A stretch of 64,000 nt of DNA from the sequence record PP856017.1; one strand, 5' to 3'. Position 1 is the first letter of the stretch; every line of letters starts with the position of its first letter. The notes beneath the pieces are model-generated. The model saw only the letters and a list, made by a program, of their open reading frames with translations, had not been told where the DNA came from and did no database searches. The position numbers were made by a program, and so were the translations under genes. Positions 1,458 through 40,770 of this stretch are shown here, in pieces.

Positions 1458-3719
1458 TCAGCTACCCGACCCGTCCGTACCACCGGTGCCGCCGTCGGTG
1501 GGTTCGAGAAAGGCCGTAGCGTTGGTGACCTCGACACCAAGCGTAGCGCGCATCGAGAGTGCTTCCTGGAGGTTGGTGACCGTGATCACGCCGAGGATCG
1601 GGCACAGCGGGATGTGGCGGAACGACGGGTGAACGATCAGTTCACGCGAGTGGCTGGTACGCGACAGGTTCAGCGCCGCGACGACTTCCGGCTTGTTCAG
1701 CATCATGCCGTGGTCGAGCGGGTGCGGAACGCCCGGGTTGTTGCTCGGGTAGCCCAGCGCGATGAAGATCTTGCCACGCACGCGCAGGTCGGGCGTCCAT
1801 GCCTTCTCGTACGAGAAGTCCGGGCCCATCGTACGCGTATCGCCTTCGACCATCAGGTACTGCGTCAGCACCATGTCGGTACCCAGCTTGACGACCGGAA
1901 GTTGTGCTTCCGTGCCTTCGAGCAGGTTGGCGGCCGCTTGCCAGTTCGACAGCTGCCACAGCTTGTACGCGACGATCTTGCAGGTGTCGGTCAGGATCGC
2001 CGTGATGTCCGAGTAGCGCTCGTGTTGAGCGGTCGTCGTGACGGCTTGCAGCAGGTCGATCGAGACTTCTTGCAGCACCGGTTCGATCAGGTACGACGAG
2101 ATGCCCATGATCTCCGGCTGACGGCCGATGATGTCCGAGCGCTTCGCGTACTGACGCAGCGAGTCGACTTCCGACAGCAGTTGCGTCACAGCCAGGTTCG
2201 ACTGACGGACCTTGCACAGGTACGACAGTGCAGCTGCGTGCAGTGCGTCTTGCGCATCGCCGTTCGTGATCGGACGTTGCACCGACAGCGGGCTGCCGAG
2301 CGAGACGCCGTAGATCTGGCGATACGTGTTGAAGTCAGCCAGCTGGCCGAGTTCACGCAAGTTCGAGTTCACGCGACGAGCGTCGATGTCCACGCCGATG
2401 ATCTGGCCGCTTTGCAGCAGCGTCACCATCGCAGCTTGACCTGCGTCCGTCACGGACAGCGACGTACCAGCCGCGTTCTTGATCGTGTTGACGACGATCG
2501 AGCCCGAGATGATTTCGTACGACGAGTCCTGCAGGTTGATGTCGCCGCGCACCGAGAACGACAGCCATGCCGTGTTCGCGTTTTCGCCTTGGAAGGCGGT
2601 CAGCAGCGTCGAAGCCGAGCCGTTGAACAGCGTCGTGTTCGGACCCACCACGGCCGAATCGGTCGTGAATTGCAGATCCATACGGCGCGTTTGGCCTTGC
2701 AGCGCTTCCGTGAACTGGTTCAGCGGGCTGTTGGTCGTGTCGAAACGGACCACTTCCTTCTTGCTGCCGTCGGCGTTCGAGAACACGACGTACACGCCCT
2801 TGAGCACAGCACCCGGGTCCAGCGCGTCGGTCTGATCCAGCACGCCCTTGGCCAGCTGCGTGTCGGTCAGCGCCAGGCGGAACAGCGAAGCGCGGTAGTT
2901 CGTCTTCAGCGGCGCCGTCTGGATCGTTTCACCTTCGTCGGTCACAGCCGCGTACGGTGCGACGAGCGTCGGATCGACGAACGCGTCGGTCGTCTGCGTG
3001 CGAACGACCGGGATGATCTTCAGCGTGTCGTTCTTCAGGATCGTCGAGTCGATTTCCGCATTGACGATGTTCTTGCGGTTGTAGTCGGTCAGACGCTGTT
3101 CGAGTTCGAAGCGAACTTGATCGTACACGGAAATCAGCGGGATTTCCATTTCGATCGCGTACTGGTCCGGCGACAGGTTCACCGTCTTGTAGAACATTTC
3201 GCCGAAGCGGTTCTGCGTGGCGGTGGCGAGCGCGAAAGCTGCCGTGAAGTTCAGCGTTTCGTCGTTCGGCTTCGTGTCGTACGCTTCCAGCGAGCGCTTG
3301 CCGAGCTTTGCCGGGTCCAGACCGCTGTTGTCCGGGATGAAGACTTCCATCGCGTTGCGGCCCTTCAGGTTCTTCAACTCGGCACGGCGTGCGAGCGATT
3401 CCTTCGGGTTCATCGCCGAGGCGAGTGCGAACGTGACAGCTTCGCGCTGCACATCGCTGACCTTGACGCCGAGCTTGGCGCCGTCCATCTTGAAGAAGGA
3501 CTCGACGCTGGCCATCACGCCGTCGAGCATGCCGCGCGCGGCTTGTTCGATGTCCGGGGAGAACGATTCGTTCGAGACGAGTGCCCGGCCGAGTTCGGCG
3601 TCGGGGCGAAGGGTGCCTTCTTTACGAAGGCTTTCGACCATGGCAAATGCGGCGCCAGCCACATTCACATGTTCCTGGTCCGCACGCTTTGCGAACTTCG
3701 AAGTGGAAACGAAAGACAT
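1458..3719 (-). CDS. Major capsid protein (phiKZ gp120-like)
   Basis: 753 aa, extreme codon bias, GAGG SD, propeptide with S-x-E site (RSLE/AYD ~aa145), next to DnaB as in phiKZ. Confidence 0.9.
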   Translation of the reverse strand: MSFVSTSKFAKRADQEHVNVAGAAFAMVESLRKEGTLRPDAELGRALVSNESFSPDIEQAARGMLDGVMASVESFFKMDGAKLGVKVSDVQREAVTFALASAMNPKESLARRAELKNLKGRNAMEVFIPDNSGLDPAKLGKRSLEAYDTKPNDETLNFTAAFALATATQNRFGEMFYKTVNLSPDQYAIEMEIPLISVYDQVRFELEQRLTDYNRKNIVNAEIDSTILKNDTLKIIPVVRTQTTDAFVDPTLVAPYAAVTDEGETIQTAPLKTNYRASLFRLALTDTQLAKGVLDQTDALDPGAVLKGVYVVFSNADGSKKEVVRFDTTNSPLNQFTEALQGQTRRMDLQFTTDSAVVGPNTTLFNGSASTLLTAFQGENANTAWLSFSVRGDINLQDSSYEIISGSIVVNTIKNAAGTSLSVTDAGQAAMVTLLQSGQIIGVDIDARRVNSNLRELGQLADFNTYRQIYGVSLGSPLSVQRPITNGDAQDALHAAALSYLCKVRQSNLAVTQLLSEVDSLRQYAKRSDIIGRQPEIMGISSYLIEPVLQEVSIDLLQAVTTTAQHERYSDITAILTDTCKIVAYKLWQLSNWQAAANLLEGTEAQLPVVKLGTDMVLTQYLMVEGDTRTMGPDFSYEKAWTPDLRVRGKIFIALGYPSNNPGVPHPLDHGMMLNKPEVVAALNLSRTSHSRELIVHPSFRHIPLCPILGVITVTNLQEALSMRATLGVEVTNATAFLEPTDGGTGGTDGSGS

Positions 3720-3831
3720 GTTGGATTACCTCTTATTCCTAGGAAAAAGGTTTTCTGACGAAAACTGCGATCTTGTACAAAACCGGTTTTGGCAGTGATT
3801 ACCACCAAATTATTGAGACGATGTTGAGTTT

Positions 3832-4473
3832 TTATTTCAAGAGATCCAGTTCGGTGAGATACCACTCGAACCAGTTCGTCTTATGCACCACGTTCAAGTC
3901 GTAGTACATTTGCAGCTTCTCGATCACAGAACGCAGGATCGCGAGACGCAGCTCTTCTTTGCGGTTGAAAATCGCCGGCGAAAGAATTCCCTGATTGAGG
4001 GCCACAACAATCAGTTTGTTCGATGCCGAATAAACGCTATAAGATTGATGAAGATCAACCTTGTTGTTTGCGTCTTGCTTCAGGTGGTCCAGAACATACT
4101 GTTCCACCAGCTTGCCACTGTAAACCTTGTTGTCGGCCAATTCCGACATCTGGTTCTTCGCATACGTATCTGCGTCAGTTCCGTTCCGGCTCACTCCCGA
4201 ATCTTCCGGGAAGTACCAGGTGTAACCGAGGCTCTTGGTATACTTCTGGTTACGATCCGTAACATGCGGGATCGTACCATTAGTCCAGAAGATGGACAAA
4301 CCATCTCCGGAGAAACTGTCGAGCGCAACCAGCTGCTCTTGCGTGAACCACTGACGCATCAGCGAGAAGTTGACGACATCTTCGGGTTTGCCTTTTTTGG
4401 CAAGTTGCTTGTAAGCCCAGTCCGGGATCACGACAACCTGTTCGCCAGGCCGTGTGTTCATGAATACGGTCAT
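3832..4473 (-). CDS. Virion-associated protein (phiKZ gp119-like position)
   Basis: ORF between capsid and helicase; likely start MTVFMN at 4473. Confidence 0.7.
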   Translation of the reverse strand: MTVFMNTRPGEQVVVIPDWAYKQLAKKGKPEDVVNFSLMRQWFTQEQLVALDSFSGDGLSIFWTNGTIPHVTDRNQKYTKSLGYTWYFPEDSGVSRNGTDADTYAKNQMSELADNKVYSGKLVEQYVLDHLKQDANNKVDLHQSYSVYSASNKLIVVALNQGILSPAIFNRKEELRLAILRSVIEKLQMYYDLNVVHKTNWFEWYLTELDLLK

Positions 4474-4570
4474 GAGATCGCCTTTATCCGGTATGAAAAT
4501 AAAATAAAAAACTTGCCCGTTCTTATTTGAACGCTGCAACAGAAAACCGACTAACTGCAGGTCTGGAACA

Positions 4571-6094
4571 ATGACCCCAAGACTACTACTTCTCAAGATC
4601 GTCACGCTCCTGCACCTCGAATCTCAAATCGAGGGCGATTCTGCGCGATCGTCCGACCTAGCCTCAGAGCTACTCGCTACGGTCAAAATCCCTGAGGCCG
4701 ACGTGGGCCTCATAGACAGTGAACGAGAGATCATTGGCTCGCTCTACAACATATGTCGCAAACTCGCCAACGCCACGCCGGGCGATGAAATGGATAAGTC
4801 GGACCTCCTTCAGGAAGTCCGTTTGCATTGCGGCACAGAGATCGATTTGTACGAATCCTTTAAGGAAGGAATCGTCCTCGAACTATCACAAGATGGTCTC
4901 AAAAAGCGCGTCAGTCACATCCGTAAAGAACTGAAAGGTTATCTTCATTACGAAGGTACCAAGAAGAAGATTATGGATACGGCCCATGCGCTTCGTTTCA
5001 AAGAGAATTCGATTGAGGATATGGATGCGTATCTTCGCGAATTCTCAACGAACATCGAGTCGTCGCTCAGTAAGTCCAACAAGAAAGATGAAGCCATTCT
5101 CGGCGCTATCGATATGTCGGATAAAGAGACTGTCGTCAAAGCTGCCTGTGCAGTAGCTGACGAGCAGAGCGGTGCAGGCAAGCTTAAGTTTCACCTGCAA
5201 GATCTGAACGACATGTTAAATGGCGGTCAGCGTCGTGGAGAGTTTCTCTGTACATCGGCGTTGCCTCACAACAACAAGACGGGTTTCTCGCTGGATTGCT
5301 TTGCAGGTGTTGCAATCAACAACGATCCGTACCTGTTTGACGCCAAGAAAAAGCCTTTGCTTCTGCGCATCTCGTTCGAAGATGACGTGGAAATGAATTT
5401 CAACCACCTCTACAAGCATTTCTGGGAACAGGAATATGGCGAGGTGGCTGTGATGACTGGCAAATCGGAAGACGACATCGCTCAGTACGTCATGGACAAG
5501 TTGACTGCGCGCGGCTGGCATGTCCGGTTGTACAAAGTCGATCCTTCGATGTGGTCGATCTTTGACCTCTTTGCTTTCGTGCGTGAACTGGAAGCAGAAG
5601 GCTATGAGATCGCCATGTGTATGCTGGACTACATGCGTAAGATGCCGACGACGGGTTGTGTGCAGGGGGTGGCTGGTGCCGACATTCGCGACATGGCGCG
5701 TCGTTGCCGTAACTTCTTCAACGCACGTAAGATCGCATTCTTCACACCTCACCAGGTTTCCACGCAAGCTAAGGAAATCCAGCGTAGTGTGCCGAAGGAC
5801 TTCGTCAAGATGTTGCCGGGTGGTGGTTACTACGATGGTTGTAAGAGTCTGGATGCGGAAATCGATATCGAACTCTTCCAGCACATCGAAAAGCACAATG
5901 GTCATTCGTATCTGACCTTGCAACGCGGCAAGCATCGCGGGGCTCCTGTGCTGCCTGACGATCAGAAATACCTTGTCTATCAGTTCTACGACATCGGTGG
6001 CATTCCTCCTGACATTGGAGGAGAGCGTACTGGTCTTCGTAAGGTGGGCGGCAAGCGTGCTTCGGAAGCAGAAACCGACTTCGACTGGCTGTAA
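4571..6094 (+). CDS. dnaB: DnaB-like replicative helicase (phiKZ gp118-like)
   Basis: deviant Walker A SALPHNNKT, Walker B MLDYM, PHQ motif, RGKHRG arginine-finger region. Confidence 0.9.
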   Translation: MTPRLLLLKIVTLLHLESQIEGDSARSSDLASELLATVKIPEADVGLIDSEREIIGSLYNICRKLANATPGDEMDKSDLLQEVRLHCGTEIDLYESFKEGIVLELSQDGLKKRVSHIRKELKGYLHYEGTKKKIMDTAHALRFKENSIEDMDAYLREFSTNIESSLSKSNKKDEAILGAIDMSDKETVVKAACAVADEQSGAGKLKFHLQDLNDMLNGGQRRGEFLCTSALPHNNKTGFSLDCFAGVAINNDPYLFDAKKKPLLLRISFEDDVEMNFNHLYKHFWEQEYGEVAVMTGKSEDDIAQYVMDKLTARGWHVRLYKVDPSMWSIFDLFAFVRELEAEGYEIAMCMLDYMRKMPTTGCVQGVAGADIRDMARRCRNFFNARKIAFFTPHQVSTQAKEIQRSVPKDFVKMLPGGGYYDGCKSLDAEIDIELFQHIEKHNGHSYLTLQRGKHRGAPVLPDDQKYLVYQFYDIGGIPPDIGGERTGLRKVGGKRASEAETDFDWL

Positions 6095-6110: not shown

Positions 6111-6145
6111 AGAGTCCCTACTCCCGCAAGGGAGTAGGGTGCTCT
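6111..6145. terminator. Bidirectional terminator between convergent genes
   Basis: CCCTACTCCC-GCAA-GGGAGTAGGG with flanking A-tract. Confidence 0.8.
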
Positions 6146-6148
6146 GGC

Positions 6149-7141
6149 TTATGCTGCCGGATTTCGAATCAACCGAACACCGTTAGCACCGACACCGGAT
6201 CTGAGGAGACCTTTGACTTCTACGACGATCTCTTTATCGATGATCGGACCATGTTCGCCAACAGCCAGAAAACGTTCAAGATAATACTGTTCCAGAAGCG
6301 CCAGGATAAAATCCTTACCAGCACCTGACTTCTTCATGGCTTCCTGAACGATATACTGCTGCCCTCGATCGGCATTATACCAGATCGCCTCAACCAGACA
6401 CTGGCTCGCACTGTCATCGTTATAACGTAACGCGTTAAAACAAAGAATTGCGAACTCGTGTTCTTTACGACGCCGTTCGTTCTTTTCTTCCTGTCGTTTT
6501 GACACAACAGATTCCGCAGGCGCCAGAGGAGGTTCAGCTGGTTCTTCCTTAACCATGGGCTCGACGGGTTCTGGAGGTAGTTCCGGTACAGTTTCACCAC
6601 GCCATTCAATGATGTCGGCAGGATCGTAGTGGGACTCATCTGGCAATACGTTCGAGTAAATACTCTCGGCTGTATTTTCTTTCCTCCAGAAGCTTTGAGG
6701 AAAGTCATCCAAAAAAGGATTAGCGTCCGGATTCAGAAAACGTTTTCTCGAACGATAGCGAGCCTGATACATCATGATCCTTGACAGGATTTCAGGATAC
6801 AGCGCGAACTGCCCTCCACGATAAGCATATGCTCCGGTAGTGTAAAACACTTTCTTTCGGAACATCTGCTTGAATTCATTCTGGTAACTGACGTCCTTAC
6901 TGTTTCGAACGATGTTGCCATGTGCTCGGTCGATGGCGTCTTCCAGGCTTCGGAAGAGATACTTTTTATTGTTCGCCAACCACAGGACACCGAAGATAGC
7001 TTCCCGCAAATTCGACACTCCGGTCTCAATGACCTTAACGAATTCGATTGCGGTTTTGTGAATGGTTTCCTGATCAGGACGAATCTTCGAATTCTCTTCC
7101 TGAAACACTTCGTCATCAAGGTAATCTGTTTTTTCCATGTT
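6149..7141 (-). CDS. Hypothetical protein, two helical domains with Pro/Glu-rich linker
   Basis: ORF with AAGAGG SD before MEKTDY. Confidence 0.75.
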   Translation of the reverse strand, partial: NMEKTDYLDDEVFQEENSKIRPDQETIHKTAIEFVKVIETGVSNLREAIFGVLWLANNKKYLFRSLEDAIDRAHGNIVRNSKDVSYQNEFKQMFRKKVFYTTGAYAYRGGQFALYPEILSRIMMYQARYRSRKRFLNPDANPFLDDFPQSFWRKENTAESIYSNVLPDESHYDPADIIEWRGETVPELPPEPVEPMVKEEPAEPPLAPAESVVSKRQEEKNERRRKEHEFAILCFNALRYNDDSASQCLVEAIWYNADRGQQYIVQEAMKKSGAGKDFILALLEQYYLERFLAVGEHGPIIDKEIVVEVKGLLRSGVGANGVRLIRNPAA

Positions 7142-7172
7142 GTTCCTCTTAGCCCATTGTAAAAAAATAATA

Positions 7173-7208
7173 ATCATAGACAGATGCCCGAAGGCATCTG
7201 TCTATGAT
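7173..7208 (-). terminator. Terminator closing winged-helix gene array
   Basis: 16-bp stem, UUCG loop on minus strand, followed by TATTATTTTTTT. Confidence 0.85.
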
Positions 7209-7216
7209 CAGAAAGG

Positions 7217-7408
7217 TTAACTGCCTTTAACTTTGTTACGCTGCATCAAGCTAATCATCCGTTTGTAGACTTCGACGAAGGTAAAACGATACCCTGCTTT
7301 AGCCAAAGCGTTTTCCACATCTTCGGCTGGAGTCAAGATACCGTTCTTCTCCATCGTTTCCAGGATGATCTTCTCGATCTTGAACTCATCGAGATCACTC
7401 TGATGCAT
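7217..7408 (-). CDS. Small winged-helix-like protein
   Basis: 63 aa, GAGGT SD, EVYKRMISLMQRNKV helix pattern. Confidence 0.6.
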   Translation of the reverse strand: MHQSDLDEFKIEKIILETMEKNGILTPAEDVENALAKAGYRFTFVEVYKRMISLMQRNKVKGS

Positions 7409-7796
7409 CTTTCACCTCAGCGGACGCCGACACCGCCGGTTCGACAGGCACCATGTACTCACCGATCAATTCCATCATGCTGTCGGTCAGAACGTAGCCC
7501 TTCTTTGTGGGATGAGCCACGCCGTCCACATGCAACTCCACCAGCAGGTTGCTGATATTCAGCTGGGGCATGAAGACCTTGCCCTGGTTGAGAGCCTTCA
7601 GAAGCAGGTTCTCGTTGATCGGTTTGTTACCGCCCTTGTACAGCGTACGGACGATGAAGCCGGAAGCCGTGATGTTCGCGTGGCCGCCGAATTCAATTGC
7701 CGCGAGAGAACCGATCGATTCTTCGGAACGAAAGCATGCTGCCGCCATGGTCTGAATACGCTTAAAGCCCTTGGCGTTTCTGTCGATTTTTAACAT
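7395..7796 (-). CDS. Winged-helix-like protein (start uncertain, 7796 or 7748)
   Basis: ISNLLVELHVDGVAHPTKKGYVLT recognition helix + wing. Confidence 0.65.
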   Translation of the reverse strand: MLKIDRNAKGFKRIQTMAAACFRSEESIGSLAAIEFGGHANITASGFIVRTLYKGGNKPINENLLLKALNQGKVFMPQLNISNLLVELHVDGVAHPTKKGYVLTDSMMELIGEYMVPVEPAVSASAEVKDASE

Positions 7797-8124
7797 TTTT
7801 AAGTGTAGCCTCCAAAATAAGTTCTCGCATTTCTGCCGAGAGTTTGAACATGCCGCCGTGAAGTGATACCACCACACCATGTTCAGTCAAAAACCGTAAC
7901 GTCTTTTTCACGTTGTAGTCGGTCGCGCTTGTAATTTTGCCACGACGCAAGTCAATGGCTACCTGGATGAAGTTCTGGGGTTGCTCAGGATCGAGCAACA
8001 ACCTTTTAATCACCAAGGCATGCAGCCCGCCCTGAGGATTATCCACTGCCGTTGAAAGCGCGACGAGTTCACGCACGGCCAAGTCCCACCTGTTTAACTT
8101 AGGTTTTTCTTTCAGGGCAGGCAT
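7762..8124 (-). CDS. Winged-helix-like protein
   Basis: AGGAG SD; VKKTLRFLTEHGVVVSLHGGMFKLS. Confidence 0.7.
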   Translation of the reverse strand: MPALKEKPKLNRWDLAVRELVALSTAVDNPQGGLHALVIKRLLLDPEQPQNFIQVAIDLRRGKITSATDYNVKKTLRFLTEHGVVVSLHGGMFKLSAEMRELILEATLKNVKNRQKRQGL

Positions 8125-8132
8125 GACAACTC

Positions 8133-8480
8133 CTAGTGGCGAATAGCCTTGCTTGCATGACTTGTGACCGATTCCAGCACGATCAGCATGTCTGAATGCA
8201 AACGATACATGACCAGAGGAATTTCCGTGTGAGTCGAAAGAATCCCCTGGTTGGCGAGTTCGATGCAGGCGTTCTGAACCATCTGAATCGTGTGCTCGCT
8301 TTCGGTCTTATAGATCAGAGACGTCAGCATTGCCGGTGAACGGGTGGCGGGTGTACCCGATGCACTCGACAGATACAGACAGTGAACAATGCGAGTCTTC
8401 GCGTCCCAACCTTCATGGGGGGCTTCGGAGATGATCTTCTCAGCCATCTGGGTACGCCACATGCTTTTTGCTGTGAACAT
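8133..8480 (-). CDS. Winged-helix-like protein
   Basis: AGGA SD; VQNACIELANQGILST...MYRLH. Confidence 0.7.
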   Translation of the reverse strand: MFTAKSMWRTQMAEKIISEAPHEGWDAKTRIVHCLYLSSASGTPATRSPAMLTSLIYKTESEHTIQMVQNACIELANQGILSTHTEIPLVMYRLHSDMLIVLESVTSHASKAIRH

Positions 8481-8483
8481 TTC

Positions 8484-9041
8484 TCAGTCCTTATAAAAGA
8501 TTTCTTGTTTCTCGATCTCGCCGAGGAGAATTGCAGCTTCCTCGCGAGAGAGCCGGACGCCGCCGCAGTAAACTTCCTTGATATCAGGATAGTTTTCTAG
8601 CAGCCAGGGAACATGCTTGTTGAACTGCGCCAGATCTTGAAGAGTGATCTCGTTGCCCTTGATCTTGACATTAGCTTCCAGGAACGACGTACTTTCAATT
8701 ACGCGTCCTTTCACGCTCTTACTCATCAGCTTCGCGAACTCGATGGTGAATTGATAAAAGGTCGGGCGATTAACCACTGCCGCGCCAGACGGTTGCCAGA
8801 TTTTAATAATCCCAGCTTCGACGAGATCCTGTATAGCAATTTCGATTTCCGTCGTCGAATACTTCTGACCCGTCATCGTCAAACGGCCAAACAAATTGCC
8901 TTGCTCGCGCCCATTCGGCAATGAGGTAGCACTCGCTACATCTTTGACTACTGCTTCTTCAACCGACTGAGGCTGATAGACCGGATCGGAAGCAACAGTG
9001 GCGAGTTTACGGATGAGTTCGTGTGTATCAGATTCATTCAT
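8484..9041 (-). CDS. Winged-helix-like protein with C-terminal extra domain
   Basis: AGGAG SD; IEIAIQDLVEAGIIKIW...FYQFT. Confidence 0.7.
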   Translation of the reverse strand: MNESDTHELIRKLATVASDPVYQPQSVEEAVVKDVASATSLPNGREQGNLFGRLTMTGQKYSTTEIEIAIQDLVEAGIIKIWQPSGAAVVNRPTFYQFTIEFAKLMSKSVKGRVIESTSFLEANVKIKGNEITLQDLAQFNKHVPWLLENYPDIKEVYCGGVRLSREEAAILLGEIEKQEIFYKD

Positions 9042-9090
9042 TTTAGCTCCTGAAAAGGAATTGTAAAGTTTACAGCAGGTATTCACGACA

Positions 9091-9110
9091 GTTATATATG
9101 TCTGAAATAA
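9091..9110 (-). promoter_or_regulatory. Putative phage early (virion RNAP) promoter
   Basis: TTATTTCAGACATATATAAC matches the recurrent TTTCA-N2/3-ATATATWAC motif, similar to phiKZ TATATTAC. Confidence 0.6.
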
Positions 9111-9120
9111 AATGCATAGT

Positions 9121-9152
9121 CATACCACTCTGGCTCACGCCAGAGTGGTATG
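9121..9152 (-). terminator. Intergenic hairpin
   Basis: 14-bp stem CATACCACTCTGGC/GCCAGAGTGGTATG. Confidence 0.75.
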
Positions 9153-9159
9153 GTAGCGC

Positions 9160-9480
9160 TTATGCAGCAATTTTAAAATTACAAATACGGTCGATCTCCA
9201 GCCTCGTCCTCAAACGCAGACGCGACTCCTTATGCAAGCGAACGTGATTGATGGAGAAGATCCGGCGCTCGACCAGATATCCTTCCGGAACCACGAAGCG
9301 GCTCTTCAGGTAACCCCGTTTTTCGAGATTCTCCAACTCTTCCATGAGACCATCTGCGTGCAATTTCCCCATTGCATCGCGAATCATGTCGGATGAAGTT
9401 TTCTCAACCCCGTAAGGTGCTTTGAGAAGATCCAGAATCAGTTCTTCACGCACCGTTAATTTTTGCTGGTCCAGTTCCAT
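9160..9480 (-). CDS. Winged-helix-like protein
   Basis: LMEELENLEKRGYLKSRF...RRIFSIN. Confidence 0.75.
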   Translation of the reverse strand: MELDQQKLTVREELILDLLKAPYGVEKTSSDMIRDAMGKLHADGLMEELENLEKRGYLKSRFVVPEGYLVERRIFSINHVRLHKESRLRLRTRLEIDRICNFKIAA

Positions 9481-9506
9481 TTTCTAAGGTCTCGTAATAG
9501 TTCTTG

Positions 9507-9683
9507 TTAGACCCGTGCGGTGTTGTTCATCGACTTCTGTTCTCCGTGCCTGTTGCGACTCGTGAGACCATTGGGATGAACAGCCGTTTTGTCGGACTGT
9601 TTGACGTCCTGCATTTCTGCAGAACTGAGATCGGATTCGGATTTGAAGCCGTTTCCTTTTGTGGTGCCGTTACCTGGTGACAT
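9507..9683 (-). CDS. Small hypothetical protein
   Basis: MSPGNG... 58 aa with GAGGA SD. Confidence 0.45.
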   Translation of the reverse strand: MSPGNGTTKGNGFKSESDLSSAEMQDVKQSDKTAVHPNGLTSRNRHGEQKSMNNTARV

Positions 9684-9740
9684 TTTATTACCCGTCCTCT
9701 TACTGTGAAAAACCACAGGATCAGACGAAAAAAAATAGTA

Positions 9741-9762
9741 GTCCGCCCTCGAAAGAGCGGAC
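9741..9762 (-). terminator. Terminator
   Basis: GTCCG..CTC-GAAA-GAGCGGAC with T-tract on minus strand. Confidence 0.6.
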
Positions 9763-9769
9763 CCTCTAT

Positions 9770-9931
9770 TTATTTCTTTTTGCCCTTATTTTTGATCTCA
9801 CCAGTGGTGATCTTTTTATCTTCATCCATCAGCTTGCGAGCCTGATCTTCCGTCATGTGATGACGTTCAGCGATGTCTTTGTCGTGAGCAGCTGCTCTGA
9901 AAAGACGACGCTGTTTCTCGTTGTACGGCAT
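9770..9931 (-). CDS. 53-aa basic protein absent from ORF track (MPYNEKQRRLFRAAAHDKDIAERHHMTEDQARKLMDEDKKITTGEIKNKGKKK)
   Basis: manual translation; AGGAG SD; fills intergenic gap. Confidence 0.75.
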   Translation of the reverse strand: MPYNEKQRRLFRAAAHDKDIAERHHMTEDQARKLMDEDKKITTGEIKNKGKKK

Positions 9932-10026
9932 GATGTTTACTCCTGACTAGAATTTCATCAATTTCCATTAAGGAGATTTTCCTGCTTGCTGAACTATCCA
10001 TCGGCGAATCGACGGCATGTCTTTCT

Positions 10027-10254
10027 CTACTTCCTCCAGAGTAGCTTTGTGGATTTTTTCCGTATTAAAAGGTAAGCATCTTTTTGTTCTTGAGATACGA
10101 TGCTTAAAACTGCATCCGCCGTACCCTTATAGTTAAGAATACAGTTTAATGAGTAATCTTCCCACTTACGGCTGATGTGGTTATAAAAATACTTCCCGTC
10201 CTCAATGTTAGTAAATCTAACAATCAAGTAATAGAATCCTAACCCATTGATCAT
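10027..10254 (-). CDS. AT-rich small hypothetical protein
   Basis: 75 aa, GGAGG SD. Confidence 0.6.
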   Translation of the reverse strand: MINGLGFYYLIVRFTNIEDGKYFYNHISRKWEDYSLNCILNYKGTADAVLSIVSQEQKDAYLLIRKKSTKLLWRK

Positions 10255-10361
10255 TCAGCCTCCCTTAATTGTAAGGCATGATACCTCCTCAAGAAAAGAT
10301 GTGACCAGCGAACCCCCTTTACTGGTCACGAAAAACCCGGCCTGAGGTGCCGGGTAACCAA

Positions 10362-11402
10362 TTACTGCTGCTCGCCGTCCGGACCCGGATAGATGTCTTG
10401 CTTGACCGACGGGGCGTTACGCTGGCGAATGAAATTCTTCACACGCTGCTCGAATTTCAGACCCGCATTTTCTTGATGCGTTTCATACAGATAATCGACG
10501 AGCGCGGAAACAATCGCACTCATTTTCGCATCACGATCCGGATCATCCGCCGGGATATTCAGCATGTTCGGATTGATGTAGTGCTGAACTGCTGCACGGA
10601 TGAAGTAATGCGATTCATCCTCAACGCCCTTGTGCTGAATTTCCTGGAGCACGCCCATCACGCTGCCGCGTTCGGCCTGCATGTCTTCGTAGGCGATCCG
10701 CGGAACCAGATTCTTTTCGACCACCCGGACAGTTGCCCCCACGCACTGCTGCTGGAACAACGCTTCCCACGGTTCAGCTTTGACGGCTGTCTCGTATTCC
10801 TCATCGTTCCAGGTAACAGGAATACCCAGTACCCGAAGCTTGTCGCAGATGATGCCGCACAACGCCGACTTGCCTACGCCGGTACGACCTTGCACGACGA
10901 CGCGGATATCGCCGCCGTTCAGGTAATCGCGCGGAAAACCCGCATGTCCCAGAACTGCCAGAACCCATGCGACCGCGCCATCCCACATAACTTTCGCGTT
11001 CTTCGTGTCGTAATGACCGTACTGATTCGCGTAGTACGGGTGATACTGGTCGTAGCGCTGTACATCCTTGATGAAGTTTTGCTTGAGTGCGAACGATTCG
11101 AATGCTTTCGTGTCATCCACAATAACGTCCGGACCCATCTGAACCAGGCCGACCTGCCAACCATACGGCTCGACTTTCACACGGAATTCCTTGCACAATT
11201 CCCGCGCCTGACGGACAGCTTCGGCTTCCGTCGTGCAATCGCGAGAATGCATTGCCATGCCGTTTTCATGCCGGAGGTAGATACCGTAGCCATCGGTATC
11301 TGCGTCGGCACCATCGAACTGAACTTCGACAGAACCCTGCTCCAGTTCCTTGAACGGAGCGACTTGAATTGCGATGACTTTGCCCAAATCTTTGTTCGAC
11401 AT
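10362..11402 (-). CDS. Mosaic hypothetical protein with internal P-loop
   Basis: IRVVVQGRTGVGKS Walker A after a beta-strand; no clear Walker B domain. Confidence 0.7.
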   Translation of the reverse strand: MSNKDLGKVIAIQVAPFKELEQGSVEVQFDGADADTDGYGIYLRHENGMAMHSRDCTTEAEAVRQARELCKEFRVKVEPYGWQVGLVQMGPDVIVDDTKAFESFALKQNFIKDVQRYDQYHPYYANQYGHYDTKNAKVMWDGAVAWVLAVLGHAGFPRDYLNGGDIRVVVQGRTGVGKSALCGIICDKLRVLGIPVTWNDEEYETAVKAEPWEALFQQQCVGATVRVVEKNLVPRIAYEDMQAERGSVMGVLQEIQHKGVEDESHYFIRAAVQHYINPNMLNIPADDPDRDAKMSAIVSALVDYLYETHQENAGLKFEQRVKNFIRQRNAPSVKQDIYPGPDGEQQ

Positions 11403-11436
11403 TGCTAATACCTTTTAAAAAGAGAGGAACATAGAG

Positions 11437-11465
11437 CTACACAGATGCCAATGGCATCTGTGTAG
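11437..11465 (-). terminator. Intergenic hairpin
   Basis: 13-bp stem CTACACAGATGCC/GGCATCTGTGTAG. Confidence 0.7.
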
Positions 11466-11480
11466 TCTGGTGTTACGACC

Positions 11481-12770
11481 TTAGTCGTTGGTTTGCGTCT
11501 TCTTGCTACGGCTGGTCTTACGTTTCGGCATCTGCGAGACGCCTTCGTGACGAGCTACCGTCTTTTCGGGAGTCTTGCTGATGACCGTACGCTTTGCAGC
11601 CGCCTTCGGACCGGCCGGCTTCTTGACGACCGTCTTCGTTTTGGTGGCCGAACCACCGTCGGTCAGACAGTTCACCTTGTAGCCGAACTTCTCGGCAATC
11701 ACCACCGCCTGACGCTGGTTCAGTCGGGAAGACAGCGTCGGGTTCTTGATGCCGATCTCGCTGGCGGCGCGAAGAACGACAGCTTCCGTATCAGCCGGCA
11801 CTTCTGCATGCTGGCTCATCGCACGCGCCAGTAGTTCCAGACGCATCGTCTTCGGGATGTCGATGGTCGGTTGCGTCTTACCCTTGCTCAGACGTTTGAT
11901 GGCCTGACCGAGAGCTGAACTCGGATCGATGCCGCGTTTTTGCGCGACACCCGTCAGACTCATTCCCGACAGATCGAGAGAAGAGATCGTCGTGATACCA
12001 CCCGAACTTGCGGACGACGAACCCGACACACCCAGAGACGACAGAGACACGCTGGGACCCGACGCCATCGTTGAACTACCCGAAGTCTCGGCGTAGTCCT
12101 CGAAGCCCGTCTGAGCCGTTTTGAGGGCTTCTGCGAACGTTCCCTGCTGACCTTGCACCAGTCGGATCGTATCCTTGAAGATAACGATCACGACCATGCC
12201 GCGCGGACCGAGTTCCATGTACTGGATGCGGTCGACTTTTTCCGGCTCGAAGTTCGCCGCGCCTTCTTCGATGCGGATGATTTCTTCACTTTTCGTGTTG
12301 TAGCCGCACCACACGCTCTTGCGGGCGACCATGTGCAGGCCGTCGGTCTGCGATGCCTTAGGATCCGGATCGCGAGTCGTGATGTCATGCTCGACGACGA
12401 GACGTCGCTTCCAGTACGAAACCGGTTCTTCGATCGGCGTATTGCTGCCTTCTGCCGGTTCACGCTGGACCGAACGTACGGTCGGCGGGAAGACTTCCGA
12501 GACCATGCGACCATGGATGAGGTCGAACATCGTCTGGTAATGCGGCTCTTGAGCCGAGCGCGCTTGTCCGGTGAAGACGACGGGCTCGTTCGTGTTGAAC
12601 GAAATTGCGTACTGCAGAACCGGCAGATCGCCGTCGACGCGACTGATGGTCGTGGAAATTTTGAGACCCTGTTTCAGGCAGGCTGCGGACAGATGTTGTT
12701 GCATCGACAGGACAGTCGCGAATTGTGCATTGACTTCCGGGTTCGCTTGATTTTTTTCGAGGCTTTTCAA
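11481..12770 (-). CDS. Multidomain protein with Ser/Gly linker, IF2_N-like domain and Lys-rich tail
   Basis: TTG start with GGAG SD; strong codon bias; MRLELLARAM...IGIKNPTLSSRLNQRQAVVIAEKFGYKV. Confidence 0.7.
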   Translation of the reverse strand: MKSLEKNQANPEVNAQFATVLSMQQHLSAACLKQGLKISTTISRVDGDLPVLQYAISFNTNEPVVFTGQARSAQEPHYQTMFDLIHGRMVSEVFPPTVRSVQREPAEGSNTPIEEPVSYWKRRLVVEHDITTRDPDPKASQTDGLHMVARKSVWCGYNTKSEEIIRIEEGAANFEPEKVDRIQYMELGPRGMVVIVIFKDTIRLVQGQQGTFAEALKTAQTGFEDYAETSGSSTMASGPSVSLSSLGVSGSSSASSGGITTISSLDLSGMSLTGVAQKRGIDPSSALGQAIKRLSKGKTQPTIDIPKTMRLELLARAMSQHAEVPADTEAVVLRAASEIGIKNPTLSSRLNQRQAVVIAEKFGYKVNCLTDGGSATKTKTVVKKPAGPKAAAKRTVISKTPEKTVARHEGVSQMPKRKTSRSKKTQTND

Positions 12771-13430: not shown

Positions 13431-13450
13431 GTAATATATCTCCAAGTTAA
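13431..13450 (-). promoter_or_regulatory. Putative early promoter
   Basis: exact ATATATTAC core on minus strand. Confidence 0.65.
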
Positions 13451-25137: not shown

Positions 25138-25252
25138 TCACCTGTTAATTATTGTAAAAACGGACTGCCTATTCTGGCAGGCTTTTCCCCCCAACTTGAA
25201 ACATTATCGCAGACGAGTTAGTTTTACTCGCTTGTCTACACAACTTCGAGGA

Positions 25253-25273
25253 AATAATATATTCGTGAATAAA
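25253..25273 (-). promoter_or_regulatory. Putative early promoter
   Basis: ATTTATTCACGAATATATTAT on minus strand. Confidence 0.5.
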
Positions 25274-25344
25274 TATACAGCGAACATAATCCCAGGAACC
25301 CTTTCGGGCCCCTGAGATTATTTTTTCGTAGTCCTTCTTCCTAC

Positions 25345-28851: not shown

Positions 28852-28870
28852 GTAATATATCGGTGAAACG
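28852..28870 (-). promoter_or_regulatory. Putative early promoter
   Basis: CGTTTCACCGATATATTAC. Confidence 0.7.
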
Positions 28871-30996: not shown

Positions 30997-31019
30997 GTAA
31001 TATATGCCTGAGTGAAAAT
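30997..31019 (-). promoter_or_regulatory. Putative early promoter
   Basis: ATTTTCACTCAGGCATATATTAC. Confidence 0.65.
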
Positions 31020-40749: not shown

Positions 40750-40770
40750 GTTATATATTACTGAAATAAT
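40750..40770 (-). promoter_or_regulatory. Putative early promoter
   Basis: ATTATTTCAGTAATATATAAC. Confidence 0.6.

Follow-up and report, generated by a model that had tools for sequence, protein, structure and literature searches.

A predicted early operon of winged-helix paralogues in the jumbo phage vB_BgluM-SURPRISE13

Introduction

What do six adjacent small genes of a jumbo phage encode, are they related to each other, and do they act together? The question is raised by positions 7217-9480 of a 64,000-nucleotide stretch (the window, meaning the whole stretch of DNA analyzed here) of Burkholderia phage vB_BgluM-SURPRISE13 (S13; PP856017.1, 227,647 bp); window positions equal record positions minus 124,000. 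The six genes, SURPRISE13_135 to _130 (gp135 to gp130), are all annotated as "hypothetical protein" in the record. Burkholderia glumae is a rice pathogen. SURPRISE13 belongs to the phiKZ-like jumbo phages and encodes PhuZ and a predicted nuclear-shell protein (PMC11898562).

An earlier note on this DNA described six consecutive minus-strand genes, which are indeed present, and read them as an anciently duplicated, diversified array of winged-helix proteins, five of which would form one early transcription unit. As possible roles, it named takeover of host transcription, genome coating or organisation, and decoys for host DNA sensors. In this study, the array was followed up by profile comparison, structure prediction and a survey of relatives. 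Four of the genes, gp131-gp134, are paralogues with a winged helix-turn-helix (wHTH) core and share a predicted early operon with gp130, while gp135 is an independent winged-helix gene in front of it.

Results

Paralogy within the array

Family alignments were prepared from nine genomes and compared pairwise by hhalign. The families are named by gene type: A (gp135), B (gp134), C (gp133), D (gp132), E (gp131) and F (gp130); family G is absent from S13, and B2, B3 and B4 are extra gp134-type copies. These comparisons show that four minus-strand genes, gp134 (8484-9041, 185 amino acids (aa)), gp133 (8133-8480, 115 aa), gp132 (7762-8124, 120 aa) and gp131 (7395-7796, 133 aa), are true paralogues of a lineage-restricted family, together with families G and B2 of relatives. 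Links were found between D and G (probability 82%, P 1e-5, 97 columns), D and E (55%, P 1.2e-4, 75 columns), and C and D (53%, P 1.4e-4, 88 columns). The merged C/D/E/G alignment matched the N-terminal domain of gp134 (88%, P 3.4e-6, 99 columns; reversed control P 0.75) and B2 (57%, P 1e-4, 98 columns). One common register was kept throughout, and the controls, namely the small neighbouring proteins gp136 and gp137, reversed alignments and ten proteins of RP31, gave P values of at least 0.019.

Bridging sequences connect the same families. In contig L013, an E-like protein matches the D hidden Markov model (HMM; 7e-6) and a B-like protein matches the C HMM (1.7e-4). Among metagenomic representatives, many match more than one of the HMMs for B, D, E and G (two or three each, at 1e-4 to 1e-7), and several match D, E and G together. 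Among 984 six-frame open reading frames (ORFs) covering about 111 kb of the genome, the family HMMs matched only gp131-gp134. A MAFFT alignment of 33 members (A8) is collinear, running from an N-terminal helix with an L-N-K...L-A signature to a Y-x-L-T wing and the next helix. In gp131-gp134, the wHTH core is flanked by one helix at the N-terminus and one at the C-terminus, a build also seen in MarR, PadR and RTP dimers.

The two outer genes stand apart. Neither gp135 (9160-9480, 106 aa; P 0.011-0.026) nor gp130 (7217-7408, 63 aa; P 0.009-0.018) is linked to the array families significantly after multiple testing; for gp130 the controls gave 0.18-0.95 and two alternative registers were obtained, and the protein is too short for a full wHTH plus flanking helices. 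The idea of an anciently duplicated, diversified array thus holds for gp131-gp134, where profile links, bridging matches and the exhaustive search agree, and is not supported for gp130 or for gp135, which also evolves more slowly and is placed before the hairpin and promoter described below. gp135 is an independent PadR-like winged helix: it has the fold and is not demonstrably a paralogue.

A wing motif specific to the array

The earlier note had listed a motif, h-x3-L-x2-L-x3-G-h-h, for all six proteins. As literally written it fits three of the six, while the 10-mers quoted for it obey h-x2-L-x3-G-h-h. The shorter motif, followed by [FY]-x-[LIF] within 3-22 residues, is present in five of the six array proteins and in none of the 51 other annotated proteins from the first 46 kb (13,087 residues). 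When the six array proteins were shuffled for 5000 rounds, it appeared in at most 2 per round. The corrected wing motif is real and specific to the array proteins. The exception is gp130, called the weakest in that note: at the site proposed, N replaces G and no [FY]-x-[LI] follows, and the profile alignment shifts the register to residues 12-25 plus YRF, with the weak P values given above.

The six proteins were also said to be divergent, and this is correct. An all-against-all BLASTP comparison detected no pairwise similarity among the six proteins, and no DNA-level repeats were found among the genes. Any relationship among the six must therefore be old.

Predicted fold

AlphaFold 2 (AF2) models were made for gp134 (from alignment A8) and for the outlier gp135 (from alignment A9), and secondary structure was assigned by DSSP. 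The gp134 model (mean predicted local distance difference test score, pLDDT, 85.5) contains helices at residues 3-18, 27-36, 47-56, 63-75 and 100-116 and strands at 79-82 and 95-98. Residues 1-116 thus comprise the N-terminal helix, the wHTH and a long helix, and are followed by a C-domain at about 121-180, in which a ββαββα unit spans 124-178. In the gp135 model (mean pLDDT 75), helices lie at 10-20, 29-35, 45-54 and 79-101 and strands at 26-28, 58-63 and 72-77; the protein is without the N-terminal helix of gp131-gp134 and has a basic C-terminal helix. Both models have the winged-helix topology H1-(β1)-H2-H3-β2-wing-β3.

Foldseek searches of the PDB point to the same fold. Among the best 50 matches for gp134 and for gp135, nearly all are winged-helix proteins, mostly with a probability of 0.9-1.0. 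The gp134 matches include TFIIE, B. subtilis RTP, Pex/PadR, TcaR and other MarR proteins, SSV1 F-93 and Fur, with template modelling (TM) scores (by target) of 0.48-0.59 on small winged helices. The best matches of gp135 are LmrR, Pex, Rv3488 and PadR, TFIIE/TFE and RTP (probability 1.0, TM 0.5-0.57). An independent BFVD prediction for an RSL2 protein of 104 aa fits the N-domain of gp134 with a TM of 0.73; the protein has the same length as the annotated family-C gene ORF122, a match made by length alone.

The profile of alignment A8 agrees with the models. Against 1.84 billion cluster representatives, only 69 reached an E-value of 0.001 or less, which indicates a very narrow family. Several of the 69 match Pfam TrmB, Penicillinase_R, PadR (1.4e-16), MarR_2, HTH_45, Rrf2 or MCM4_WHD at E-values of 1e-5 to 1e-16, and significant matches to HTH_Crp_2 and TFIIE_beta occur among them as well. 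Against PDB sequences, the best 50 matches of the superfamily profile are almost exclusively winged-helix proteins (best E 0.003, AdcR), while shallow profiles of single families found nothing meaningful there. The C-domain of gp134 has no credible match among PDB sequences and none in Pfam. In Pfam, PHROGs, NCBIfam and PADLOC, the six S13 proteins matched only family-specific PHROGs of unknown function, apart from sub-threshold matches. Weak Pfam matches across the gp135 family are mostly to winged-helix families, and gp132 has a weak match to a PHROG "transcriptional regulator" (E 0.014).

Taken together, the predicted structures place gp134 and gp135 in the winged-helix superfamily. gp133, gp132 and gp131 can be assigned to it by homology to gp134, through in-register alignments over 75-99 columns. 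The winged-helix prediction for all six is therefore upheld by models for gp134 and gp135 and by homology for gp131-gp133, while gp130 shows weak profile similarity only. At the sequence level the family appears to be new, an orphan inside a known fold.

Charge differs between the members. gp132 has an isoelectric point (pI) of 9.5-10.2 in 8 of 8 members, a basic tail and a near-invariant ATDYN[VI][KR]K in the segment aligned with the start of the gp134 recognition helix; it is the best DNA-binding candidate. gp135 (pI 7.9-9.5) has a C-terminal helix that is highly basic. gp131, gp133 and gp134 are neutral to acidic, gp133 having a neutral pI.

Transcription unit

TATATWAC was observed 6 times in the window against 0.71 expected, and the five minus-strand sites all lie between genes and are oriented like the genes that follow. 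The early-promoter motif that the earlier note saw near 9091 is one of them: TATATAAC at 9091-9098 (minus strand) sits between gp135 and gp134. It forms the core of a 35-nt phiKZ-type early promoter-like site (9082-9116, minus strand) that matches the published N1M2/OBP consensus at 30 of 35 positions; this is the best match in the window, and shuffled windows reached maxima of 23-26. The site between gp135 and gp134 is conserved in relatives and hardly varies among the close ones. The putative nuclear-shell gene gp235, expected to be an early gene in a phiKZ-like phage, also has a TATATTAC core, 103 nt upstream. The consensus was predicted for the promoters of the phiKZ-like phages N1M2 and OBP, and the phiKZ core is given as TATATTAC (PMC7058600). 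In transcript-profiled phages, AT-rich motifs upstream of early operons constitute the early promoter consensus and are attributed to the virion RNA polymerase (RNAP) (PMC7598289).

More early-promoter-like copies, all on the minus strand, were noted at window positions 13431-13438, 25245-25279, 28852-28859, 30997-31004 and 40750-40757 and at record positions 226351-226358. They are intergenic and co-directional, and are located upstream of gp141, gp160, the gp165 block, gp168, gp177 and gp235. At 40750-40761, a plus-strand promoter-like copy overlaps the minus-strand copy.

Directly after gp135 lies a hairpin (9121-9152, minus strand; 14-bp perfect stem, 4-nt loop, then a T-rich tract), a likely terminator or insulator. 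A hairpin occupies the same place in 12 of 12 relatives examined, and its stem sequences differ, which indicates compensatory changes as judged by eye. Because gp135 is upstream of both the conserved hairpin and the operon promoter, it appears to be a separate transcription unit.

The operon begins with a conserved 5' leader (9042-9081, minus strand), which carries a ribosome-binding site and the palindrome TGTAAA-N-TTTACA (9062-9074; 7+1+7 in RSL2). These 40 nt are nearly invariant in 9 of 10 aligned relatives, though the protein of the first gene is only 30-39% identical between SURPRISE13 and relatives. The palindrome was considered as a repeated operator or regulon signal and rejected, as it is unique in the window.

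The five genes gp134-gp130 are separated by gaps of 3 and 8 nt or overlap, by 35 nt at gp132/gp131 (7762-7796) and by 14 nt at gp131/gp130 (7395-7408). The ORF list has longer versions of gp134 and gp131; the conserved N-termini of relatives fit the annotated starts. The N-terminus of gp131 (MLKIDRN...), encoded within the overlap, is conserved in all relatives, suggesting translational coupling. A programmed frameshift at this overlap was rejected, because in most relatives the gp132 homologues (132-133 aa) extend deeper into the overlap, and because gp131 starts at a conserved site of its own.

After gp130, the last gene, the operon is closed by an intrinsic terminator (7171-7210, minus strand) with an 18-bp stem, a 4-nt loop and a T run. 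Within the stem lies the perfect 16-nt inverted repeat (7173-7208) that had been proposed as the terminator. A strong hairpin with a T run directly follows the last array gene in 11 of 11 relatives examined. The view that the five genes form one likely early transcription unit is thus borne out by a conserved promoter, 5' untranslated region, gene packing and terminator, and a single tightly packed operon, from a phiKZ-type early promoter to an intrinsic terminator, is a well-supported prediction. We infer from sequence its early timing and the start of its transcript.

Relatives and evolution of the array

The same array was found in related jumbo phages and is confined to Chiangmaivirus-like ones. 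Homologues exist only in the Chiangmaivirus-type phages RSL2, RSF1, FLC4-4C, FLC4-5C, FLC4-11C, FLC6, FLC8 and RsoM3USA and in a handful of uncultivated contigs. A tblastn search of 50,697 phage genomes with gp134, gp132 and gp135 returned only 11 Chiangmaivirus-type records; a word-indexed search with the gp134 family among 5.8 billion proteins gave 5 matches, all close relatives; and a metagenome contig scan with the gp132 family revealed no relative.

Gene order is fixed: A, the hairpin and promoter, one to four B-type genes (B, B2, B3, B4) per genome, C, D, E, G, in some cases F, and the terminator. The gp130-type gene is present in 5 of the 9 array loci compared. The gp135-type gene is found in all relatives, always first in the locus, and is 75-98% identical among close relatives; in contigs L013, L019 and L024 the array is also preceded by an A-type gene. 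Two annotation points were noted. RSL2 has an unannotated gp132-type gene in an annotation gap (L002:5310-5705, minus strand; record about 124957-125352), and in RSF1 the gp132 homologue (L007:5069-5422) is covered only in part by ORF129.

The array is placed between the major-capsid/DnaB block and the next conserved genes, and it adjoins divDNAB in every relative with enough sequence, L019, L020 and L024 included. An older origin of the array was considered and rejected, as the syntenic slot after DnaB holds unrelated proteins in RP31, large opposite-strand genes in FLC9, and no array in two IMG/VR contigs with 65% DnaB identity. No array was present in contigs L014 or L015. Since phages with DnaB 40-65% identical have other genes there, the slot appears to be variable and lineage-specific.

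Within the lineage, the genes diverge at different rates. Between phages whose DnaB is 89-91% identical, identities are 76-87% for A, 60-78% for E, 44-54% for D, about 40% for C and 30-39% for B; for B, C, D and G together the range is 30-54%. gp135 evolves 2-3 times slower than the array paralogues. Pairwise ratios of nonsynonymous to synonymous substitution (dN/dS) are 0.03-0.23 for gp137, gp136 and A, 0.10-0.47 for E, and about 0.13-0.5 for B, C and D, which indicates purifying selection on all families and weaker constraint on B, C and D. The array is also mosaic. RSF1 and the Logan contig L009 share 85% identity in B and only 40% in C, whereas RSL2 and FLC4-5C share 91% in C and only 49% in B. 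This indicates that single genes are exchanged between phages as cassettes.

In more distant relatives, array domains are fused into chains of two to at least five winged helices, often ending in a gp134-type C-domain. The L013 fusion (8938-10293, minus strand, 452 aa) has two winged helices and the C-domain. L019 encodes one protein of 941 aa (8001-10826) with at least five winged helices and the C-domain, and another of 304 aa (10862-11776) with two and the C-domain. The L020 fusion (2906-4720, 604 aa) has four winged helices, and L024 has a fusion of 594 aa (8001-9785) and a second protein of 252 aa. The array locus of L020, a Logan SRR31751386 contig, also encodes a 184-aa protein (1795-2349, plus strand) with a match to the C-terminal domain of the RNAP alpha subunit (alpha-CTD; PF03118, E 3.1e-8, residues 124-171), a hint that the locus may deal with RNA polymerase.

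Neighbouring genes

Three genes next to the array, gp129, gp136 and gp137, have no family match, and no function was found for gp136 or gp137. gp129 (6149-7138), which follows the array terminator, is highly variable or replaced among relatives (176-339 aa). A second terminator after gp129 (6116-6139, minus strand) belongs to the same sequence family as the array-end terminator where G is the last gene. Before gp135 lie two conserved tiny proteins, gp136 (9507-9683, 58 aa) and gp137 (9770-9931, 53 aa), with dN/dS of 0.03-0.22; gp137 has its own terminator (9740-9763). The DnaB-like helicase gene (plus strand) starts at 4703 in the record (463 aa). An ORF that opens at 4571 encodes 507 aa, as many as the helicases of relatives have, and is 88-91% identical to them over residues 1-507, so the annotated start is probably too far downstream.

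Discussion

Function of the array

The reading favored here, with a probability of about 0.5, is that the array is an early operon of wHTH paralogues encoding dimeric nucleic-acid-binding proteins, which may serve as a modular regulator that controls the early-to-middle expression of phage or host genes. The array proteins would be made within minutes of infection, form homo- or heterodimers through their flanking helices, and bind nucleic acid. gp132 and gp135 would be the DNA-contacting members and gp131, gp133 and gp134 the partner or specificity subunits, and the separate proteins would act jointly on one target. By Rosetta-stone logic, the natural fusions into multi-winged-helix chains suggest joint action of the paralogues. 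Phage-encoded wHTH transcription factors are common among jumbo phages (PMC7824862). The suggestions of genome coating and of decoys gained no support, as nothing favors either over ordinary regulator or adaptor roles.

Several observations weigh against this reading. Two of the six proteins were modelled; the fold of gp131-gp133 follows by homology, and the links of gp130 stay at P 0.009-0.018. The Foldseek E-values for gp134 and gp135 are modest (1e-3 to 1e-1), and the six S13 proteins singly reach no curated threshold in Pfam, NCBIfam or among PDB sequences. The recognition helices of gp131, gp133, gp134 and gp135 have few or no basic residues, and the net charge of the H2-H3-wing region is 0 to -4, atypical for DNA-binding wHTH proteins. 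The near absence of basic residues suggests that gp131, gp133 and gp134 may be partner or adaptor subunits instead of independent DNA binders. In addition, no repeated operator-like site was found; the only palindrome, that of the leader, occurs once in the window.

Alternatively, the proteins would be protein-binding winged-helix adaptors that dock on the phage multisubunit RNAP or the host RNAP, in the manner of TFIIE/TFE or Rpc34, and alter promoter use instead of binding DNA specifically. This alternative is doubtful, although various observations fit it. Most paralogues have acidic or neutral recognition helices, tandem fusions of 2-5 winged helices occur in relatives, and the L020 locus encodes the alpha-CTD protein, which is a neighbour in a single contig. 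The Foldseek matches of gp134 and gp135 include TFIIE, TFE-alpha and a Pol III subunit, but the TFIIE matches are generic winged-helix ones (TM 0.35 for gp134, with a high root-mean-square deviation) and no better than those to PadR, MarR and RTP. The RNAPs of phiKZ-like phages have no sigma factor (PMC7824862). RSL2 and RSF1, which carry the array, are rifampicin-sensitive and hence need host RNAP, whereas RP12 and RP31 are resistant and do not depend on it (PMC5468394) and RP31 has unrelated genes at the syntenic site; this correlation sets two phages against two, with DnaB only 40% identical. It is quite unlikely that the array and its fused forms represent modular TFIIE/TFE-like initiation or specificity factors for sigma-less phage RNAPs, or factors that capture host RNAP. 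Capture of host RNAP, if it occurs, would account for the dependence of RSL2 and RSF1 on this enzyme, which sets them apart from other phiKZ-like phages.

The rapid divergence of the paralogues might instead reflect a host-interaction or counter-defence panel, in which fast-evolving proteins bind and neutralise variable factors of the host (nucleoid proteins, sensors or defence regulators) and use the winged helix as a scaffold for protein or nucleic-acid-mimic binding. Such a role agrees with the inferred early expression, the variable B-type copy number, the cassette exchange, the low identity of B, C, D and G next to a well-conserved DnaB, and the position in a lineage-specific island beside DnaB, where RP31 has unrelated genes and L014 and L015 have no array. 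It is nevertheless unlikely: whole-gene dN/dS values of 0.1-0.5 do not, at this resolution, point to positive selection, PADLOC and the other family searches gave no match, known anti-defence proteins are absent among the structural matches of gp134 and gp135, and divergence does not follow host genus, the copies of FLC6 (Burkholderia host) and FLC4-5C (Ralstonia host) being near-identical. The position beside the helicase might also suggest replication-linked winged helices, such as contrahelicases of the RTP type or DnaD-like organisers that act with the neighbouring DnaB-like helicase. For both models, the top Foldseek matches include B. subtilis RTP, which has the same wHTH plus long C-helix build, and family members have weak Pfam matches to DnaD_N and DciA; however, PadR and MarR score as well as RTP does, and the Pfam matches are non-significant. 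The constant neighbourhood with divDNAB is offset by the convergent orientation of the helicase gene, by the terminators in between (in S13 also a variable gene) and by the unrelated genes in the same slot of RP31, so a replication role is very unlikely. That the shared motif is a chance resemblance of unrelated small ORFs might be thought from the lack of pairwise BLAST similarity and of PDB matches to single-family profiles. This is effectively refuted for gp131-gp135 by the motif statistics, the hhalign links with their reversed and neighbour-gene controls, the bridging sequences, the structure predictions, the conserved gene order and the purifying selection.

Significance

The analysis provides a fold or family assignment for the array's "hypothetical" genes and their relatives in about a dozen Chiangmaivirus-like jumbo phages, a group under development as biocontrol agents against Burkholderia glumae and Ralstonia. 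It defines a concrete predicted early operon, with promoter, leader, five genes and terminator, which offers a handle on the lineage's programme in the first minutes of infection. In the relatives, duplication, exchange of cassettes and fusion into chains of several winged helices form a clean natural series, an entry point to the question of promoter recognition for phiKZ-type RNA polymerases. If the array proteins are ordinary repressors or nucleoid binders, the result is a useful annotation without surprise.

Comparison with known systems

The short subfamily of PadR (LmrR, Pex, Rv3488; PF03551) resembles the array proteins in several respects. Its members have about 105-120 aa and a wHTH followed by a single long C-terminal helix; the array sequence L-x2-L-x3-G-h-h, wing and Y-x-L-T corresponds to a PadR-like H3/wing signature; and PadR proteins are the best Foldseek matches of gp135 and among the best of gp134. 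The models of gp134 and gp135 have a PadR-like architecture of wHTH plus C-terminal helix, the dimerisation helix in PadR. Unlike PadR, however, gp131-gp134 have an extra conserved N-terminal helix, most array recognition helices are non-basic, and the genes are tandem paralogues or fusions, not a single autoregulated gene. No PadR HMM match above the gathering score was obtained for the six proteins or for the 33 aligned relatives.

In MarR proteins (TcaR, SlyA, AdcR, HucR), N- and C-terminal helices also flank the wHTH and form the dimer interface. Many gp134 Foldseek matches belong to this family, and so does AdcR, which scored best among PDB sequences (E 0.003) with the superfamily profile. 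MarR proteins have two or three helices on either side of the wHTH, whereas the array proteins, in which no ligand pocket can be seen, are shorter and have one. The MarR HMMs (PF01047/PF12802) match none of the S13 proteins; only a distant 578-aa representative, P0053, matches MarR_2. Because the architecture is PadR/MarR-like and the HMMs of both families failed, the array proteins should not be filed in either.

B. subtilis RTP, of about 120 aa, likewise combines a winged helix with a long C-terminal helix; it ranks second in Foldseek for gp134 and within the best 25 for gp135, and the array adjoins a DnaB-type helicase gene. On the other hand, no sequence similarity between RTP and the array proteins was detected, the array is insulated from a helicase gene that converges on it, and no Ter-like repeats were found in the window. 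TFIIE, archaeal TFE and Pol III Rpc34 bring several winged helices together as an RNAP adaptor, comparable to the fusions of two to five domains in relatives, and they occur among the Foldseek matches. The array proteins have no zinc ribbon or other defining TFIIE elements, and with a TM of 0.35 for gp134 the match may be to the generic fold only.

A survey of jumbo phages reported that 92% encode their own transcription factors, 1-15 per genome with a median of 2 and mostly HTH or wHTH proteins (Iyer et al. 2021, PMC7824862). Lineage-specific expansions are known as well, for example, the Myb-type HTH factors of Bacillus phage G (PMC7824862). The main text of that survey does not mention RSL2, and no search of the survey for the array family was made (PMC7824862). 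Members of the family carry no functional name in the records and sources examined. The array differs from the known expansions in being a single contiguous, predicted early operon with fission and fusion between relatives. In sum, it represents a new sequence-orphan family with a known fold and a known class of role, and is unusual mainly as one contiguous early operon of paralogues that split and fuse between relatives.

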